From contig NIVC01004792.1 of NCBI GenBank assembly GCA_002269645.1, forward strand, positions 1 to 34,986: DNA of 34,986 nt. Reading direction: 5' to 3'. Below are positions 2,816 to 33,510 of the stretch, piece after piece. The stretch's first letter is position 1, and each line of letters opens with the position of its first letter. A program made the translations under genes and the position numbers. Below the pieces are notes generated by a model that saw only the letters and a list, made by a program, of their open reading frames with translations, was not told the origin of the DNA and did no database searches. This stretch comes from Macrostomum lignano. Its lineage: Eukaryota.

Positions 2816-13279
<10,464 letters not shown>

Positions 13280-13358: not shown

Positions 13359-13619
13359 CAAGCTAATGGCGACTCAGCTAGTGCAAGCTAATGGCGACTC
13401 AGCTAGTGCAAGCTAATGGCGACTCAGCTAGTACAAGCTAATGGCAACTCTACCAATACAAGCTAATGGCAACTCTACCAATACAAGCTAATGGCAACTC
13501 TACCAATACAAGCTAATGGCAACTCTACCAATACAAGCTAATGGCAACTCTACCAATACAAGCTAATGGCAACTCTATCAATACAAGCTAATGGCAACTC
13601 TACCAATACAAGCTAATGG
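13359..13619. repeat. 25-bp minisatellite (CAAGCTAATGGCAACTCTACCAATA), about 10 copies, just upstream of POLQ
   Basis: Tandem copies forming two sub-arrays of variant units. Confidence 0.95.
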
Positions 13620-14036: not shown

Positions 14037-15716
14037 TCAAAAACGACGACCGCTGTCTTTGCGATGCTTGGCCTGGAGGTCCCGGACAGCCGCGGCTTTG
14101 CGGCCGGAGCCTCCTGGACCCGCCTGCTGCTGTCCGCGCCCACGCCGACCCTGGCCGCTCGGTCTCGGATTGCGGCGAGCGCGGCTCGGGCCGGCAGCCC
14201 CCTGCTCCCGATGACCGCGGCCGGCCGTGGCTGGAAGACCCCGGCCCAACGTCTTCAGAGCACGAATATGGGCGCCCTTAGCCTTCAGCTCGTCATAGCG
14301 ATCCAGTTGAGCATGCTTTTTATTGCGACGATCGACCGAAAACAGTCCACGCTTGCGCTGGCTCTTCGGAGGACGCTTCTTAAGACCACGACGGCCCAAC
14401 AATGAGTTCTGCCCACGCTCGTGGCGCTTTGTCAAACCAAGCTCACGCTCGAGCTCAAGGCCTGGCGAACGACGGTTACGGCTAGTCATCGGCTCAAGCC
14501 GCTCGAGCTCAAGGCGGTCGGACGGACGACGGTCTCTGCTAGTCATTGGCTCAAGCCGCTCGAGCTCAAGGCGGTCGGACGGACGACGGTCTCTGCTAGT
14601 CATTGGCTCAAGCCGCTCAAGCTCTAGGAGGCCTGGGAAACGATGGTTACGGCTCGTCATCGGCTCAAAAGTAGGATTGCGCCAGTTCATCGCAAGTGGC
14701 TCCTGCTCACTACGGTCCCGGTGCCTAGTTGCACCGGGTGCGCGCTCATAACGCCCTATCGCTCCAAGTCCTTGCTCTCGGTGACCTACAGCGCCGAGTC
14801 CATGCTCACGGTGACCTAGAGTACCAAATCCATGCTCTCGGTGACCTATAGCGCCGAGTCCATGCTCACGGTGACCTATAGCGCCGAGTCCATGCTCACG
14901 GTGACCCACAGCGCCGAGTCCATGCTCACGGTGACCCACAGCGCCGAGTCCATGCTCACGGTGACCCACAGCGCCGAGTCCATGCTCACGGTGACCCACA
15001 GCGCCGAGTCCATGCTCACGGTGACCCACAGCGCCGAGTCCATGCTCACGGTGACCTACAGCGCCGAGACCATGCTCACGGTGACCCACAGCGCCGAGTC
15101 CATGCTCACGGTGACCCACAGCGCCGAGTCCATGCTCACGGTGACCCACAGCGCCGAGTCCATGCTCACGGTGACCCACAGCGCCGAGTCCATGCTCACG
15201 GTGACCTATAGCGCCGAGTCCATGCTCACGGTGACCCACAGCGCCGAGTCCATGCTCACGGTGACCCACAGCGCCGAGTCCACGCTCTCGGTGACCTAGA
15301 GTACCAAATGCACGCTGACGGTCTCCCATTGCACCGAACCGATAGTTGTTGCGGCGTTGCGCCATAGCAGCAAAATCTGGCCCATAAACAGCCCGATTCA
15401 AAGGCTTATCAACCCAGTCAAGACTGCGAATGATGCCGGTCAACTTTTTCTTGTCTAATATACTTTCCTTGTCTCTGCGAGCGAGCATTCTATCGACAGC
15501 TGACAGCGTCATGCTTTCGTTGAGGCTGCTATCGCTTGACTCGAGGCCGCTCTCGCAGTCACGGCTTATCAGGCTGTCACTGAGCAGTGTTTCCTGGCCC
15601 CGACTGGCAGATGAGGCCACGCCAGACTCCGAGTAGCCGCCAAAAAGGCGAGGCGAGAGATGGCGGTAGCGGGCTAACGGACTGCGCTGGCGATGCATCG
15701 CGTGAGCGGGAAGCAT
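14037..15716 (-). CDS. Intronless orphan protein (about 559 aa from the first ATG): Ser-rich N-terminus, His/Gly decamer repeats, 19-aa repeats, basic C-terminus
   Basis: Long ORF with non-repetitive flanks. Most variants among the core repeat units are synonymous or conservative in this frame (GTG/GTA/ATA, GGA/GGT). The track starts at GTG 15752; the first ATG is at 15716. Confidence 0.7.
   Translation of the reverse strand: MLPAHAMHRQRSPLARYRHLSPRLFGGYSESGVASSASRGQETLLSDSLISRDCESGLESSDSSLNESMTLSAVDRMLARRDKESILDKKKLTGIIRSLDWVDKPLNRAVYGPDFAAMAQRRNNYRFGAMGDRQRAFGTLGHRERGLGAVGHREHGLGAVGHREHGLGAIGHREHGLGAVGHREHGLGAVGHREHGLGAVGHREHGLGAVGHREHGLGAVGHREHGLGAVGHREHGLGAVGHREHGLGAVGHREHGLGAVGHREHGLGAVGHREHGLGAIGHREHGLGAIGHREHGFGTLGHREHGLGAVGHREQGLGAIGRYERAPGATRHRDRSEQEPLAMNWRNPTFEPMTSRNHRFPGLLELERLEPMTSRDRRPSDRLELERLEPMTSRDRRPSDRLELERLEPMTSRNRRSPGLELERELGLTKRHERGQNSLLGRRGLKKRPPKSQRKRGLFSVDRRNKKHAQLDRYDELKAKGAHIRALKTLGRGLPATAGRGHREQGAAGPSRARRNPRPSGQGRRGRGQQQAGPGGSGRKAAAVRDLQAKHRKDSGRRF
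14440..14680 (-). repeat. Coding 57-bp repeat (EPMTSRDRRPSDRLELERL), about 4 copies
   Basis: Visible in both DNA and translation. Confidence 0.88.
14761..15330 (-). repeat. Coding 30-bp repeat (GAVGHREHGL), about 19 copies
   Basis: Exact 30-nt periodicity with a near-identical core and degenerate edges. Confidence 0.96.
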
Positions 15717-16304: not shown

Positions 16305-18036
16305 TCAAGCCTCCTCGTCATCATCGACTTCCTCGTCACCGCTCGCCATTTCCGCGTCGTCGTCACTGCTGCCGCCATCGTCGGGATCGTCGTCAAGCAG
16401 CTCGGGCACAAAGTAGGACAGGCCGTCGTCCAGCACGGTGGAGGTCAGGCGCACCCTGCCGGGGGCTTCGGCGGCGGCCTTGGCCGCAGTCTCGCTGAGA
16501 AGGTCGTCGGTAAGCCGGCCGCCGGCCGCCTTGTCCCAGCAGGCGACGGGCCGCACCCGGAACTCGGCCATCTGGTACTGGCACAGCTTCAGCACCTCGC
16601 ACTGCTCCGGGGTGAGGCGGCGACCCCGCCGGCAGACCAGATGCGGCCGCTCCAGGTGGATGACACCTTTGACCAGGCGCACAGGCAGGCCCAGCTTCCG
16701 CAGCGCGGGCTCCATCGAGTGCTGCCACTGCGGGCAGGCGCCGGGCATCAGTTCAACGCTGTTCACCGCGGCAAAGCCGGACCTGGCGAAGTCGGCGTCG
16801 GTGAGGCCGGCCAGGAGCTCCGACACTGCGGCCAGGCTCCGGTTGGTGAACAGCAGGGCCTTCTGGTTGCGCAGCAGGCGGCTCAGCCGGTGCAGATTCG
16901 GCTGCAGCTCGTCCCCGGGCGTCAGGCCCAGCGCCTTGGCGATGAGGCGGTTCTTGCCTAGCAACAGCTTGCTGTCCTTCAGCTCGGCTCGCAGCATCTG
17001 AGGGGCGAATTCGGGGTGCAAATTTTGAGACGGATATTCCAGCGCGGTGAAAACCCTACATAGGCACTAAGCAGGTGAAATAGGAAAGTGACTTTAAACG
17101 ACTTTAAAACGACGCCGATGAAACGACGCTCAAGAGAGTCACTCTGAAGCGTCTTATTGTCTGCGACTCGTTTGCGTACGACGCATTTGCGTCGCTTGAT
17201 GAATTCGAGTCGCATCACTAGCGAAAGTTGAGCGCCAACCACAGATACTAGAAGAATAACAAGATGTGCCAGTCAAGCATATACACTTAGTAAAACAGCT
17301 TTCTATTTTCAGTTCAGTAGCAAAGAAGAATACATAAGCTATTTTATAAAAAAACAAAGCCAGCTGAAATGACTTCGATAAGCTTAGAAGCCCAAGCTTG
17401 CAGGCGTAAACAGTTAATTGGCTCAGCAATAATGTACATTAGCCAGTCCACTGAAATGTACATAGCAGCTTTAGGCTGGAATTCCAAGAAAGGCAATAAA
17501 AATTGGGTCCGGGCTGGGGGTGTGGAAAGGCGCGGTTGGAGGGTTAAAGCCGGGGGTAAAAGCCAATAAATGAGCATTGCCTTTAAAAATAAATAAAAAT
17601 GCTTCAGTTGAACCTACTACTGAGCAAAAAGTAGCTTGCACGCAAATGTGCTGAGCGGCCCCTCTAGTTATTCTAGTATCTTTGGCGACAACACAACGAT
17701 TCTTGGACAAGTCTTTTGCGACTTTTTTACGATTCTACAACTCACGTGACGCGCTTGTGACGCAACAGTCGCCTCTCCGTCGCATTAGACGCGTTTGAGT
17801 AGTCTGAAAAAAGTCACAAGAGTCGCCCCAGGGTCGCTAGTGCAACAATAGCCAAGACACCCGATTCTCACCTGCAGCTTGGAGCTGCGCATGTTGTCAA
17901 TGCACAGCACCAGAATCCTATCGTAGGAGTTCACCAGATCCCTGACGCGCTCCATCAGCTGGGATTTGACATCCTGACTGCGCCGCTTCTTGGTCTTGGT
18001 GAGCGGCACTGGCCGGTCTCGCTTCGACTTGGGCAT
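16305..18036 (-). CDS. MRTO4: mRNA turnover protein 4 / ribosome assembly factor Mrt4 (P0-like); 2 exons (18036-17872, 16997-16305), about 285 aa
   Basis: MPKSKRDRPVPLTKTKK N-terminus, NMRSSKL, LGKNRLIAKALG, ALLFTN, DFARSG, HSMEPALRKLGLP, GRRLTPEQCEVLKL and an acidic tail. Junction CAG|GTGAGA ... cctcag|ATG is phase 0. Confidence 0.95.
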
Positions 18037-24881: not shown

Positions 24882-25052
24882 CTAGCTTCAGCAAAAAAAT
24901 TATGCTATTTACGTTTCTTGCTTTGAGAACTATTGTTCTTTTTAGTAAATATACCATCGAATCCTTCTAGCTTCAGCGATAAAAATATTTTATGCAATTT
25001 ACGTTTCTTGCTGTGAGAACTATTGTTCTTTTTAGTAAATATACCATCGAAT
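24882..25052. repeat. Tandem duplication of an about 81-86-bp unit
   Basis: Two copies of ctagcttcagc...tttacgtttcttgc..gagaactattgttcttttta gtaaatataccatcgaat starting at 24882 and 24967. Confidence 0.92.
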
Positions 25053-25293
25053 TGTACAATTTTGCAGACTATTAGCAGAGCCTTTCAAACGGATGCTTGA
25101 AAAAAAATAGTCGACGATATAGAATCAGAATCAACGATACACTATTTGTGGGATAATGTACAAATTAAATCCAGAATGAATTTCTTCGATAAAACTTGGT
25201 CTTTGCCTAAAACTAGCAAAAATAAAGTTGCAAGCCACTGAACGCGCAAAGGAGTTGCTAGAATTGTAGCAGTCGATTACGAAGCTATTAGTA

Positions 25294-25299
25294 TTTATT
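25294..25299 (-). terminator. Polyadenylation signal AATAAA of the Cys-rich peptide gene
   Basis: Lies about 105 nt downstream of the stop codon on the coding strand. Confidence 0.5.
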
Positions 25300-25402
25300 T
25301 TGGTACCAAATTAATTGACAATTAAAACCATAAAACTGAAATGGATGATGCATCGTTCAGCCTCTGATCAGGTGAGAGCCGCCCGGGTCAGTCAGCGAGC
25401 GC

Positions 25403-25612
25403 TCAGGTGCAGCGGTACATGCGGGGATTGTAGCAGTGCGTGCCGCACTTGCGATGACCGACCGGGCACAGGAAGTAGCCATTGATGCAAGTGTGCGTCC
25501 TCGGGCTGTAGCAGGTGCCGCCGCAGGACCGGTCGCCGCCACCGCAGGCGTCAGTAGAGTTCACAGACACGGCCAGCAGAACCAGCAGGCAGACGCAGAG
25601 AGCCTTCATCAT
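25403..25612 (-). CDS. Secreted 69-aa cysteine-rich peptide resembling carbohydrate-binding module family 52 (Carb_bind)
   Basis: Hydrophobic signal peptide, then CGGTCYSPRTHTC-INGYFLCP-VGHRK-CGTHCYNPRMYRC. It has 8 mature Cys, GC-rich codons, an upstream TATA box and a downstream AATAAA. Confidence 0.8.
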   Translation of the reverse strand: MMKALCVCLLVLLAVSVNSTDACGGGDRSCGGTCYSPRTHTCINGYFLCPVGHRKCGTHCYNPRMYRCT

Positions 25613-25752: not shown

Positions 25753-25760
25753 TATTTATA
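25753..25760 (-). promoter_or_regulatory. TATA box (TATAAATA) of the Cys-rich peptide gene
   Basis: Consensus TATA in a GC-rich context about 140 nt upstream of the ATG. Confidence 0.6.
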
Positions 25761-26625: not shown

Positions 26626-26907
26626 CGAAGGGATCGGGGTGATGGGATGAAGGGGATCAGAGTCAGTGGATGAAGGAATCAGAGTCCGTGGATGAAGGAA
26701 TCAGGGTCCGTGGATGAAGGGATCGGGGTGATAGGATGAAGGGGATTAGAGTCAGTGGATGAAGGAATCAGGGTCCGTGGATGAAGGGATCAGGGTCCGT
26801 GGATGAAGGGATCAGGGTCCGTGGATGAAGGGATCAGGGTCCGTGGATGAAGGGATCAGGGTCCGTGGATGAAGGGATCAGGGTCCGTGGATGAAGGGAT
26901 CAAGGTC
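26626..26907. repeat. 22-bp minisatellite (GATGAAGGGATCAGGGTCCGTG), about 12 copies
   Basis: Tandem copies, homogeneous on the right and degenerate on the left. Confidence 0.93.
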
Positions 26908-27928: not shown

Positions 27929-30900
27929 ATGATGCTGTGTTGTTTGAGCTGTAGAGATGATGCTGTGAGCTGTAGAGATGATGCTGTGTTGTTTGAGCAG
28001 TAGAGATGATGCTGTGTTGTTTGAGCTGTAGAGATGATGCTGTGAGCTGTAGAGATGATGCTGTGTTGTTTGAGCAGTAGAGATGATGCTGTGTTGTTTG
28101 AGCAGTAGAGATGATGCTGTGAGCTGTAGAGATGATGCTGTGAGCTGTAGAGATGATGCTGTGAGCTGTAGAGATGATGCTGTGTTGTTTGAGCAGTAGA
28201 GATGATGCTGTTTGAGGTGTAGAGATGATGCTGTGTTGTTTGAGCTGTAGAGATGATGCTGTTTAAGCTGTAGAGATGATGTTGTGTGAGCTGTAGAGAT
28301 GATGCTGTGAGCTGTAGAGATGATGCTGTGTTGTTTGAGCAGTAGAGATGATGCTGTTTGAGGTGTAGAGATGATGCTGTGTTGTTTGAGCTGTAGAGAT
28401 GATGCTGTTTAAGCTGTAGAGATGATGTTGTGTGAGCTGTAGAGATGATGCTGTGAGCTGTAGAGATGATGCTGTGTTGTTTGAGCAGTAGAGATGATGC
28501 TGTGTTGTTTGAGCAGTAGAGATGATGCTGTTTGAGCTGTAGAGATGATGCTGTGAGCTGTAGAGATGATGCTGTGAGCTGTAGAGATGATGCTGTGTTG
28601 TTTGAGCAGTAGAGATGGTGCTGTGTTGTTTGAGCAGTAGAGATGATGCTGTTTGAGCTGTAGAGATGATGCTGTGTTGTTTGAGCTGTAGAGATGATGC
28701 TGTTTGAGCTGTAGAGATGATGTTGTGTGAGCTGTAGAGATGATGCTGTGTTGTTTGAGCAGTAGAGATGGTGCTGTGTTGTTTGAGCAGTAGAGATGAT
28801 GCTGTTTGAGCTGTAGAGATGATGCTGTTTGAGCTGTAGAGATGATGCTGTGTTGTTTGAGCAGTAGAGATGATGCTGTGTTGTTTGAGCAGTAGAGATG
28901 ATGCTGTTTGAGCTGTAGAGATGATGCTGTGAGCTGTAGAGATGATGCTGTGAGCTGTAAAGATGATGCTGTGTTGTTTGAGCTGTAGAGATGATGCTGT
29001 TTGAGCTGTAGAGATGATGCTGTGTTGTTTGAGCTGTAGAGATGATGCTGTGTTGTTTGAGCTGTAGAGATGATGCTGTTTGAGCTGTAGAGATGATGTT
29101 GTAAGCTGTAGAGATGATGCTGTGTTGTTTGAGCAGTAGAGATGATGCTGTGTGAGCTGTAGAGATGATGCTGTGAGCTGTAGAGATGATGCTGTGAGCT
29201 ATAGAGATGATGCTGTGAGCTGTAGAGATGATGCTGTTTAAGCTGTAGAGATGACGCTGTGAGCTGTATAGATGATGCAGTGAGAGCAGTAGAGATGATG
29301 CTGTGTTGTTTGAGCTGTAGAGATGATGCTGTTTGAGCTGTAGAGATGATGTTGTGAGCTGTAGAGATGATGCTGTGTTGTTTGAGTAGTAGAGATGATG
29401 CTGTTTGAGCTGTAGAGATGATGCTGTGAGCTATAGAGATTATGCTGTGTTGTTTGAGCTGTAGAGATGATGCTGTTTGAGCTGTAGAGATGATGTTGTG
29501 AGCTGTAGAGATGATGCTGTGTTGTTTGAGCAGTAGAGATGATGCTGTGTGAGCTGTAGAGATGACGCTGTGAGCTGTAGAGATGATGCTGTGAGCAGTA
29601 GAGATGATGCTGTGAGCTGTAGAGATGATGCTGTTTAAGCTGTAGAGATGACGCTGTGAGCTGTATAGATGATGCAGTGAGAGCAGTAGAGATGATGCTG
29701 TGTTGTTTGAGCTGTAGAGATGATGCTGTTTGAGCTGTAGAGATGATGTTGTGAGCTGTAGAGATGATGCTGTGTTGTTTGAGCAGTAGAGATGATGCTG
29801 TGTGAGCTGTAGAGATGATGCTGTGAGCTGTAGAGATGACGCTGTGAGCTGTAGAAATGATGCTGTGAGCTGTAGAGATGATGCTGTGAGCTGTAGAGAT
29901 GATGCTGTTTAAGCTGTAGAGATGACGCTGTGAGCTGTAGAGATGACGCTGTGAGCTGTAGAGATGATGCTGTGAGCTGTAGAGATGACGCTGTGTTGTT
30001 TGAGCTGTAGAGATGATGCTGTTTGAGCTGTAGAGATAATGTTGTGAGCTGTAGAGATGATGCTGTGTTGTTTGAGCAGTAGAGATGATGCTGTGTGAGC
30101 TGTAGAGATGATGCTGTGAGCTGTAGAGATGACGCTGTGAGCTGTAGAAATGATGCTGTGAGCTGTAGAGATGATGCTGTGAGCTGTAGAGATGATGCTG
30201 TTTAAGCTGTAGAGATGACGCTGTGAGCTGTAGAGATGACGCTGTGAGCTGTATAGATGATGCTGTGTTGTTTGAGCTGTAGAGATGATGCTGTGTTGTT
30301 TGAGCTGTAGAGATGATGCTGTTTGAGCTGTAGAGATGATGTTGTAAGCTGTAGAGATGATGCTGTGTTGTTTGAGCAGTAGAGATGATGCTGTGTGAGC
30401 TGTAGAGATGATGCTGTGAGCTGTAGAGATGATGCTGTGAGCTATAGAGATGATGCTGTGAGCTGTAGAGATGATGCTGTTTAAGCTGTAGAGATGACGC
30501 TGTGAGCTGTATAGATGATGCAGTGAGAGCAGTAGAGATGATGCTGTGTTGTTTGAGCTGTAGAGATGATGCTGTTTGAGCTGTAGAGATGATGTTGTGA
30601 GCTGTAGAGATGATGCTGTGTTGTTTGAGTAGTAGAGATGATGCTGTTTGAGCTGTAGAGATGATGCTGTGAGCTATAGAGATGATGCTGTGTTGTTTGA
30701 GCTGTAGAGATGATGCTGTTTGAGCTGTAGAGATGATGTTGTGAGCTGTAGAGATGATGCTGTGTTGTTTGAGCAGTAGAGATGATGCTGTGTGAGCTGT
30801 AGAGATGACGCTGTGAGCTGTAGAGATGATGCTGTGAGCTGTAGAGATGATGCTGTGAGCTGTAGAGATGATGCTGTTTAAGCTGTAGAGATGACGCTGT

Positions 30901-32892
30901 GAGCTGTATAGATGATGCAGTGAGAGCAGTAGAGATGATGCTGTGTTGTTTGAGCTGTAGAGATGATGCTGTTTGAGCTGTAGAGATGATGTTGTGAGCT
31001 GTAGAGATGATGCTGTGTTGTTTGAGCAGTAGAGATGATGCTGTGTGAGCTGTAGAGATGATGCTGTGAGCTGTAGAGATGACGCTGTGAGCTGTAGAAA
31101 TGATGCTGTGAGCTGTAGAGATGATGCTGTGAGCTGTAGAGATGATGCTGTTTAAGCTGTAGAGATGACGCTGTGAGCTGTAGAGATGACGCTGTGAGCT
31201 GTAGAGATGATGCTGTGAGCTGTAGAGATGACGCTGTGTTGTTTGAGCTGTAGAGATGATGCTGTTTGAGCTGTAGAGATAATGTTGTGAGCTGTAGAGA
31301 TGATGCTGTGTTGTTTGAGCAGTAGAGATGATGCTGTGTGAGCTGTAGAGATGATGCTGTGAGCTGTAGAGATGACGCTGTGAGCTGTAGAAATGATGCT
31401 GTGAGCTGTAGAGATGATGCTGTGAGCTGTAGAGATGATGCTGTTTAAGCTGTAGAGATGACGCTGTGAGCTGTAGAGATGACGCTGTGAGCTGTATAGA
31501 TGATGCTGTGTTGTTTGAGCTGTAGAGATGCTGTTTGAGCTGTAGAGATGATATTGTGAGCTGTAGAGATGATGCTGTGTTGTTTGAGCAGTAGAGATGA
31601 TGCTGTTTGAGCTGTAAAGATGATGCTGTGAGCTATAGAGATGATGCTGTGTTGTTTGAGCTGTAGAGATGATGCTCTTTGAGCTGTAGAGATGATGTTG
31701 TGAGCTGTAGAGATGATGCTGTGTTGTTTAAGCAGTAGAGATGATGCTGTGTGAGCTGTAGAGATGATGCTGTGAGCTGTAGAGATGATGCTGTGTTGTT
31801 TGAGCAGTAGAGATGATGCTGTGTTGTTTGAGCAGTAGAGATGATGCTGTTTGAGCTGTAGAGATGATGCTGTTTGAGCTGTAGAGACGATGCTGTGTTG
31901 TTTGAGCTGTAGAGATAATGCTGTTTGAGCTGTAGAAATGATGTTGTGTGAGCTGTAGAGATGATGCTGTGAGCTGTAGAGATGATGCTGCGTTGTTTGA
32001 GCTGTAGAGATGATGCTGTGTGAGCTGTAGAGATGATGTTGTGAGCTGTAGAGATGATGCTGTGAGCTGTAGAGATGATGCTGTGAGCTGTAAAGATGAT
32101 GCTGTGTTGTTTGAGCTGTAGAGATGATGCTGTTTGAGCTGTAGAGATGATGCTGTGTTGTTTGAGCTGTAGAGATGATGCTGTTTGAGCTGTAGAGATG
32201 ATGTTGTGTGAGCTGTAGAGATGATGCTGTGAGCTGTAGAGATGATGCTGTGTTGTTTGAGCAGTAGAGATGATGCTGTTTGAGCTGTAGAGATGATGCT
32301 GTTTGAGCTGTAGAGATGATGCTGTGTTGTTTGAGCAGTAGAGATGATGCTGTGTTGTTTGAGCAGTAGAGATGATGCTGTGTGAGCTGTAGAGATGATG
32401 CTGTGAGCTGTAGAGATGATGCTGTGAGCTGTAAAGATGATGCTGTGTTGTTTGAGCAGTAGAGATGATGCTGTTTGAGCTGTAGAGATGATGTTGTGAG
32501 CTGTAGAGATGATGCTGTGCTGTTTGAGCAGTAGAGATGATGCTGTGTGAGCTGTAGAGATGATGCTGTGAGCTGTAGAGATGACGCTGTGAGCTGTATA
32601 GATGATGCAGTGAGAGCTGTAGAGATAATGATGTGAGCTGTAGAGATGATGCTGTGAGCTGTAGAGATGATGCTGTGAGCTGTAGAGATGATGCTGTGTT
32701 GTTTGAGCAGTAGAGATGAGGCTGTGAGAGCTGTAGAGATGATGCTGTGAGCTGTAGAGATGATGCTGTGAGAGCTGTAGAGATGATGCTGCGTGAGCTG
32801 TAGAGATGATGCTGTGTGAGCTGTAGATGATGCTGTGAGCTGTAGAGATGATGCTGTGAGCTGTAGAGATGATGCTGTTAGAGCTGTAGAGA
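27929..32892. repeat. About 5-kb compound minisatellite (core AGCTGTAGAGATGATGCTGT; 21, 22, 23 and 28-bp variants) with higher-order duplications
   Basis: Continuous array; rare variants recur at a fixed 1243-bp offset. Confidence 0.98.
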
Positions 32893-33510
32893 CTTCTCCA
32901 ATCGCACACATTTCGGAGATAGAGTGAGATGCAGATTGGAGTTGGTCTGAAGTAAATTTTGCACCTACAAATGCTGAGCAGCAGCTGACAAGGCTCGATG
33001 CCAGCCTCTGCATGGCAAACCCCATTCTGCATGGGTTTAAGCACCGCTTAAAGAATGCAAGAAGTCGTGGCGGCGCGAGTTGCTTGCTGACACAGAAGGA
33101 ACAAGAACGAGCAGTTTTTTATTAACTGAAGCGATAGACTCGGCCGCAGGGGACCGAGGAAGGAAAAGTGCGTCATCGGTCGAACACAGAGTGAAATAAA
33201 TTAAGGTCTGCGAATGTGGGTAATTCTGCTTCAAAATAAGCACAGATCTGCAGTAGCAACAAGAAGAGATCGGACACAAAAAGCACAAAACAACGAATCT
33301 TCTGCTGCGTCACTCTGAAGATTGGAACAACAGTCGGACAAAAGCGAAGCTCAGAGGAATTCCAGCTTCAGCCGCTCCTGACTCAGCTGGTCTATCAGGT
33401 GGTAAGCGGCGATTTTGGGCGATTTTAAAGTTTGCAGTCTTTGGGTAACATCAAGTTTACGACAGCTGGTACTGATTTAGTTGAGTGACGAATGTCTGTT
33501 GCCATAGCAA

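Follow-up and report, generated by a model that had tools for sequence, protein, structure and literature searches.

The closest described system is the CBM52 module (Pfam PF10645, Carb_bind) of S. pombe Eng1, which is described, in work cited in PMC6980582, as binding beta-1,3-glucan and directing the enzyme to the septum. It was for this binding activity that CAZy established the family. Attachment to a glucanase is typical of CBM52 and not obligatory. Stand-alone members are known in fungi: MGG_05232 of M. oryzae, named GBP, consists of a signal peptide and CBM52 and is a putative glucan-binding protein (bioRxiv 10.1101/2025.07.03.663104), and in Trima_00904 of T. matsutake CBM52 is the only recognised domain (PMC6980582). 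The CBM52 repeats are likewise the sole recognised domain of KAJ7452615.1 from Mycena latifolia, the only fungal stand-alone protein that we compared by sequence. Invertebrates recognise beta-1,3-glucan with proteins of another kind, GNBP/betaGRP, which are about 50 kDa in size and carry an N-terminal CBM39 and a GH16-like domain.

We describe here a new, minimal animal member of the CBM52 family, a known family that is poorly characterised in structure and function. The gene lies in a stretch of 34,986 nucleotides, referred to below as the window, which is contig NIVC01004792.1 of assembly GCA_002269645.1; the NCBI product of an allelic copy carries the name Macrostomum lignano. It is a real gene encoded by the flatworm itself, with an intact reading frame, a match to the family profile, animal genes around it, a confidently modelled fold and a repeat that is widely spread among other organisms. 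The ORF list of the whole window gives its product as 69 aa from the ATG start, MMKALCVCLLVLLAVSVNSTDACGGGDRSCGGTCYSPRTHTCINGYFLCPVGHRKCGTHCYNPRMYRCT, and the gene is laid out as follows.

25403..25612, minus strand: coding sequence of the CBM52-family mini-protein, single exon, 69 codons plus stop (ORF list)
25556..25612, minus strand: predicted signal peptide, residues 1-19, MMKALCVCLLVLLAVSVNS (hydrophobicity profile; small residues at -3/-1)
25469..25546, minus strand: repeat unit 1, residues 23-48, CGGGDRSCGGTCYSPRTHTCINGYFL (Cys spacing 6-3-7-6; alignment A2)
25406..25468, minus strand: repeat unit 2, residues 49-69, CPVGHRKCGTHCYNPRMYRCT (Cys spacing 6-3-7)
25755..25760, minus strand: TATAAA, putative promoter motif, 143 nt upstream of the ATG (motif scan)
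25294..25299, minus strand: AATAAA polyadenylation signal, 104 nt downstream of the stop codon (motif scan)

The preliminary description of this DNA had spoken of an intact, intronless gene with a TATA box and a polyA signal, and this holds: the ORF is exactly as listed and both motifs are present. Upstream of the ATG, the reading frame is closed by a stop at a distance of 33 codons, and the motif scan found no GTRAGT donor-like site inside the ORF. The AATAAA is the sole AATAAA/ATTAAA on the minus strand within 25100-25410. Both it and the TATAAA are kept in all three genomic copies of the gene, the TATAAA being identical in each. The third-codon-position GC content (GC3) is 0.83, compared with 0.74-0.89 in neighbouring genes. 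The 210-bp gene is called identically on two contigs, with PF10645 precomputed for both. A locus tag exists for an allelic copy, and because the GenBank annotation of GCA_002269645.1 was built on an RNA-seq-guided transcriptome (PMC5730564), a transcript has been seen. For expression by tissue or condition, the identifier 'Mlig018268' was absent from the searchable full texts and from two supplement sets. About 350 bp downstream of the poly(A) signal, the DNA is AT-rich and contains two copies (91% match) of a 90-bp unit at 24882-25052.

Kyte-Doolittle means of 2.4-3.3 across residues 1-17 of the precursor point to a signal peptide, which would be cleaved at the small-residue site between VNS and TD. 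The pattern C-x6-C-G-x2-C-Y-x-P-x4-C-x6, a unit of 26 residues, then occurs twice in the predicted mature peptide, giving an overall Cys spacing of 6-3-7-6-6-3-7; the two units are identical at 10 of 21 comparable positions. Both units contain CG-x-x-CY-x-P-x-x-x-x-C, with INGYFLCP between them, so that the arrangement noticed in the preliminary description (this motif twice, with an NGYFLCP linker) was found exactly. The stand-alone secreted architecture proposed there also agrees with the product, which is made up of the signal peptide and the two units only, with no GH81 or other catalytic domain. The mature peptide has 50 aa, 5.5 kDa, 8 Cys, a pI of 8.7 and a net charge of about +3.6. Together with the signal peptide, this is the general make-up of defensin-like molecules, and a CBM52 module would naturally be aimed at wall glucan. 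The peptide might thus be a cationic, Cys-rich antimicrobial or antifungal effector that is targeted to cell walls through the CBM52 scaffold and inhibits growth directly. We consider this improbable, as the charge is modest and no known antimicrobial peptide was similar in sequence or in structure (Foldseek against the PDB returned only E > 1).

Family membership was assessed by hmmscan against Pfam. PF10645 matched the peptide with 36.3 bits (gathering score 25, E = 6.6e-9) over residues 29-69, which correspond to window positions 25406-25528 and to profile positions 1-45 of 49. Carb_bind was the sole Pfam model above threshold. IGFL (PF14653) reached 11.1 bits (cut-off 25, E 0.43) and fell short of its gathering score, Nodulin_late and ATE_N gave less than 10 bits, which is noise, and the galaxin model PF24748 gave no match to the peptide at E <= 10, while the same library's PF24748 matched six relatives. 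The preliminary description had called the product CBM52-like, proposed the PF10645 comparison, and named two outcomes that would speak against it, namely the lack of a CBM52 match or a better galaxin match; neither came true, with PF10645 above its cut-off and PF24748 silent. In alignment A2, which comprises the peptide and 33 relatives, five Cys are invariant, and conservation reaches 90% or more at two further Cys, one Tyr and one Pro; the flatworm peptide has every one of these residues. The alignment also shows that the peptide has the family signature CG..CY.P....C-(x)-LCP-(x)-CG..CY.P..Y.C. Judged by its sequence, the flatworm peptide is a member of the CBM52 family.

The signature and the HMM match above the gathering score are what the peptide shares with Eng1-type CBM52 of S. 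pombe; it differs in having no GH81 or other catalytic domain, only two units and an animal host. Since stand-alone CBM52 proteins are known in fungi, the missing catalytic domain is no bar to membership and its absence does not exclude the peptide from the family. Like the flatworm peptide, the M. oryzae and Mycena proteins have a reported or evident signal peptide. The fungal stand-alone proteins presumably work on the wall of the fungus itself or where it meets its host, unlike the flatworm peptide, and the Mycena protein is longer, at 149 aa, and has the long-spacer form of the repeat. With GNBP/betaGRP the likeness is one of proposed role only, the secreted recognition of beta-1,3-glucan in an animal; fold and sequence are unrelated, and no homology of the flatworm peptide to these proteins was detected.

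We then consider how widely the repeat occurs. When 1.84 billion cluster representatives were scanned exhaustively with phmmer, 187 proteins passed E <= 1e-3, of which 34 passed E <= 1e-10. PF10645 matched 112 of the best 149 as well. The Pfam E-value of 6.6e-9 and the 187 representatives indicate that the Cys pattern is not a product of chance. Other domains among the best 149 relatives were Fasciclin (6), CBM96 (4) and Astacin (2), along with GH64 beta-1,3-glucanase, GH16, papain-type protease and ricin-type lectin. Organism names were available for only some of the matches. The named carriers include the tardigrade Hypsibius exemplaris, with a 664-aa protein containing 16 matched stretches and a repeat-bearing astacin protease; the bdelloid rotifers Adineta ricciae and Didymodactylos carnosus; a protist, represented by one EukProt protein; the chytrid Chytriomyces hyalinus; the rumen fungus Piromyces finnis (Neocallimastigomycota), whose protein is named ConA-like lectin/glucanase; and the mushroom Mycena latifolia. 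Two small metagenomic matches of high GC content (P0067 and P0049) had 54-61%-identical relatives in four genomes of Nannocystis (Myxococcota) in a contig search, located as follows.

Positions 3001-3330: Nannocystis relatives (L006-L009) in N. pusilla, N. sp. RBIL2, N. punicea and N. bainbridge

These proteins of predatory myxobacteria are small and conserved, and consist of a signal peptide and three CBM52-type units, C-x6-CG-x-CYDP-x4-C. A looser match was found in an Acidobacteriaceae MAG (L010), and a genome-contig search with another relative, P0011, as query gave no match. With the repeat present in a tardigrade, rotifers, a protist, fungi and Nannocystis, CBM52 is not essentially a fungal repeat. 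The view of the preliminary description that it is known mainly from fungi therefore has to be revised in favour of animals, a protist and Nannocystis bacteria as further carriers.

The multi-repeat members from animals (Hypsibius OWA54156.1, the astacin fusion OQV15023.1, Adineta CAF1132197.1 and the Didymodactylos carnosus protein) all come from micro-invertebrates. They are long, with about 5-18 recognised units, and some are fused to proteases; the flatworm peptide, with its two units, is minimal by comparison. PF10645 matched the tardigrade and Adineta proteins, two above the cut-off and one just below, and the Didymodactylos carnosus protein had no Pfam match. The C-x6-C spacer of the flatworm is the commonest form, occurring in 429 of 537 recognisable units, and is common to the flatworm, tardigrade, protist, Piromyces-like and Nannocystis-like members. 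It is also found in the Didymodactylos protein, and Adineta has C-x5-C. In contrast to the regular flatworm spacing of C-x6-C-x3-C-x7-C-x6, Mycena and 14 similar matches mostly have a spacer of roughly 10 residues, and in many of these fifteen the first half-unit is one Cys short. Judging by the resemblance of these matches to Mycena, the only named protein of the fifteen, the spacer of about 10 residues may be typical of higher fungi (Dikarya).

The preliminary description had also suggested that the gene was possibly acquired horizontally. Transfer from a fungus or another microbe would agree with the intronless gene and with the so far patchy distribution in animals, namely the flatworm, the tardigrade and the bdelloid rotifers, the last two of which feature often in discussions of horizontal gene transfer. 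The best single-domain matches scored 40-48 bits and were mostly unnamed proteins from metagenomes or run assemblies, and among the named ones the top scores were fungal, if marginally so (Mycena 42 bits, a Piromyces relative 40 bits, Hypsibius 33 bits). On a Cys scaffold of 50 aa, a gap between 40-42 and 33 bits is too small for phylogenetic placement, and such a scaffold carries too little signal to call a donor. Domain-level identity to the best matches was only about 45-56%, with no match above about 56% and none that indicates a donor. The Cys spacing is unlike that of the Mycena-like matches and the same as in tardigrade, protist, chytrid and bacterial members, the GC3 matches that of host genes, and the promoter and poly(A) motifs are of animal type. 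We therefore regard transfer or contamination of the contig as very improbable. Recent transfer is unsupported, given the host-like codon bias, the animal-type promoter and poly(A) motifs and the lack of a donor-like close match, and an ancient transfer of the gene is possible. The commonest Cys spacing, the host-like GC3 and the absence of a close donor thus do not bear out the suggestion of horizontal acquisition.

The remainder of the window was examined for its gene content, which is given here together with its tandem repeats.

16305-18036, minus strand: homologue of MRT4 (mRNA turnover 4 / ribosome assembly factor), BOX15_Mlig003157g1 (homologue search)
about 3541-12870, minus strand: POLQ-like gene with DEAD, Helicase_C and DNA_pol_A domains
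3143-3509, 8375-8530, 9498-9897, 11701-12051 and 12745-13050: short tandem arrays
13359-13619, 14446-14668, 14767-15296 and 26627-26907: further short tandem arrays

The MRT4 homologue adjoins the CBM52 gene on its downstream side and on the same strand, and its closest relatives with a name come almost entirely from metazoans. Its Pfam domains had at first suggested RPLP0; the homologue search identified MRT4 instead. In the POLQ-like gene, the DEAD exon (12220-12870) and the Helicase_C+HTH_61 exon (9965-10771) both precede a 1488-aa ORF (3541-8007) with DNA_pol_A at its end. This large ORF contains in-frame tandem repeats of 21, 30 and 63 bp (4159-4275, 6374-6628 and 7367-7782), and its central region is repetitive. 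Tandem arrays with units of 14-57 bp are numerous in intergenic DNA as well as among and next to the exon ORFs of the POLQ-like gene, and a (CAGA)n microsatellite of about 296 copies occupies 1035-2195. A minisatellite of 5 kb at 27941-32892 consists of about 211 copies of a 21-23-bp unit (consensus TGTTTGAGCTGTAGAGATGATGC), can also be read at a period of 72 bp, has a strong GC skew of about +0.6 and occurs in both sister loci with differing length. Two ORFs of 526 aa and 438 aa inside it (31445-33044, minus strand) had no Pfam match and are probably spurious. These arrays are consistent with the 15% of the M. lignano genome that is made up of simple and tandem repeats (PMC5730564). The animal-type genome recognised in the preliminary description is that of Macrostomum lignano, and the metazoan-type MRT4 and POLQ-like genes, the repeat-rich introns and three loci with conserved synteny rule out contamination of the contig.

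The three assembly copies of the CBM52 gene are in the window, in NIVC01001342.1 (a 310-kb contig) and in NIVC01005137.1. Over about 750 bp, comprising the CDS and about 540 bp of non-coding flanks, they are identical save for one 1-bp deletion; the wider flanks are about 95-99.6% identical, with gene order kept. The deletion is in NIVC01005137.1 (L003, 10001-10255), where GGTCGGTC becomes GGTC-GTC. It causes a frameshift after residue 51 and the loss of the second repeat unit, and the resulting product is the 84-aa 'hypothetical protein BOX15_Mlig018268g3' in GenBank. The deletion could be a true null allele or a long-read indel error. The assembly is known to be redundant, with 180 Mb in blocks at least 95% identical, and the line carries extra chromosomes (PMC5730564). 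The three-copy locus fits this redundancy, so the copies are alleles or homeologues, and because the 5' and 3' non-coding sequence is identical too, they are uninformative on constraint or selection. No tandem paralogues of the gene were found by tblastn in the window or the two sister loci.

Searches for an orthologue sharing sequence words, with the single peptide and with the 34-sequence alignment as queries, returned none from another species, only the peptide itself and the frameshifted allele. Word-indexed searching is too insensitive for Cys repeats of 50 aa, for which the full HMMER scan is required. For the MRT4 homologue, a Logan sequencing-run assembly contains a protein of 82% identity, which may belong to another species of Macrostomum; in that case the CBM52 gene would be lineage-restricted, fast-evolving or weakly expressed.

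We modelled the mature peptide with AlphaFold2, using a 34-sequence alignment of two-unit segments. The model has a mean pLDDT of 93.4, with 43 of 50 residues at 90 or above, and consists of six short strands forming three beta-hairpins; four disulfides are predicted. The family profile matched no PDB sequence even at E <= 10, and Foldseek of the model against the PDB and BFVD gave nothing at E < 1, and the CBM52 family thus appears to be without a solved structure. Among small PDB entries the granulin-like conotoxin MiXXVIIA (6ppc) came closest, but weakly (rmsd 1.7 A over 26 columns, E 4.5, probability 0.15), which gives no more than a hint of likeness between the modelled peptide and granulin-like hairpin stacks.

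Galaxin-like (PF24748) and IGFL (PF14653) repeats are, like CBM52, short extracellular repeats rich in Cys, Tyr and Pro. Galaxin-like repeats each contain CC dicysteine pairs, which are absent from the sequence of the flatworm peptide. Within the HMMER set P0003-P0150, Galaxin_repeat cross-matched six relatives and IGFL five, and one relative (P0068) has galaxin-like CC pairs within CG..CYNP....CC units. On these sequence similarities, CBM52, galaxin-like and IGFL repeats may form one superfamily. The same cross-matches, together with the peptide's own faint IGFL match (E 0.43), bear on the possibility that the peptide is a disulfide-rich extracellular repeat of a generic kind whose ligand is not glucan, as in a matrix, adhesive, seminal-fluid or signalling peptide, and that its CBM52 label records scaffold ancestry only. 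In the animal relatives the fusion partners are astacin or fasciclin domains and not glucanases, and the invariant positions of alignment A2 are mostly the scaffold residues Cys, Gly and Pro. Set against this, only Carb_bind passes its threshold and the galaxin model is silent on the peptide, aromatic residues typical of sugar-binding platforms are conserved alongside the scaffold in alignment A2, and several relatives are part of glucanases. We find it somewhat doubtful that the label reflects ancestry alone.

The reading that we favour, at a probability of roughly 45%, is that the peptide is a small secreted lectin that would bind beta-1,3-glucan through the CBM52 fold. After cleavage of the signal peptide, it would be secreted and would form a stack of hairpins held by four disulfides. 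Exposed aromatics could then offer a platform for beta-1,3-glucan, namely the tyrosines of the two CY-x-P motifs, the Y/F that precedes LCP and the Tyr preceding the final Cys. Since the flatworm has no beta-glucan wall or polymer of its own, the ligand must be external. Diatoms store the beta-1,3-glucan chrysolaminarin. Candidate ligands are thus the chrysolaminarin of the diatoms eaten by the worm, or the walls of fungi and oomycetes, and the peptide may serve in digestion or capture, or in microbial recognition and defence. The culture food of M. lignano is the diatom Nitzschia curvilineata (PMC5730564).

Glucan binding is supported by the relatives that carry GH64, GH16 or CBM96 and by the Piromyces member, a ConA-like lectin/glucanase. 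Weighing against it are the distant relationship of the flatworm peptide to Eng1, the sole module with shown binding, the sub-threshold overlap of the family with repeats that do not serve to bind carbohydrate (galaxin-like and IGFL), and the presence of only two units in the peptide. Eng1 has more repeats and is said to require long glucan chains. A wider proposal can be framed, which we hold to be unlikely: the CBM52 repeats of micro-invertebrates (flatworm, tardigrade and rotifers) would be an unrecognised class of animal beta-1,3-glucan receptors or lectins unrelated to GNBP/betaGRP or Dectin-1, with the Macrostomum peptide as its minimal two-unit form of about 5.5 kDa, capturing gut chrysolaminarin or flagging fungal and oomycete walls, and CBM52, galaxin-like and IGFL repeats would belong to one ancient superfamily of extracellular hairpin stacks.

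What we report annotates a small, uncharacterised gene by homology and will not surprise specialists, since Pfam already detects the peptide. The survey of relatives corrects the common picture of CBM52 as something fungal: bacteria, protists and several animal phyla carry the repeat too, and it shades into those of the galaxin-like and IGFL types. If the peptide does bind beta-1,3-glucan, it would be among the smallest natural glucan-binding modules and might serve as a compact beta-glucan probe. Animals would then be using the CBM52 scaffold as well, a point that would matter for innate immunity in invertebrates and for the way in which a worm living on diatoms deals with its food.
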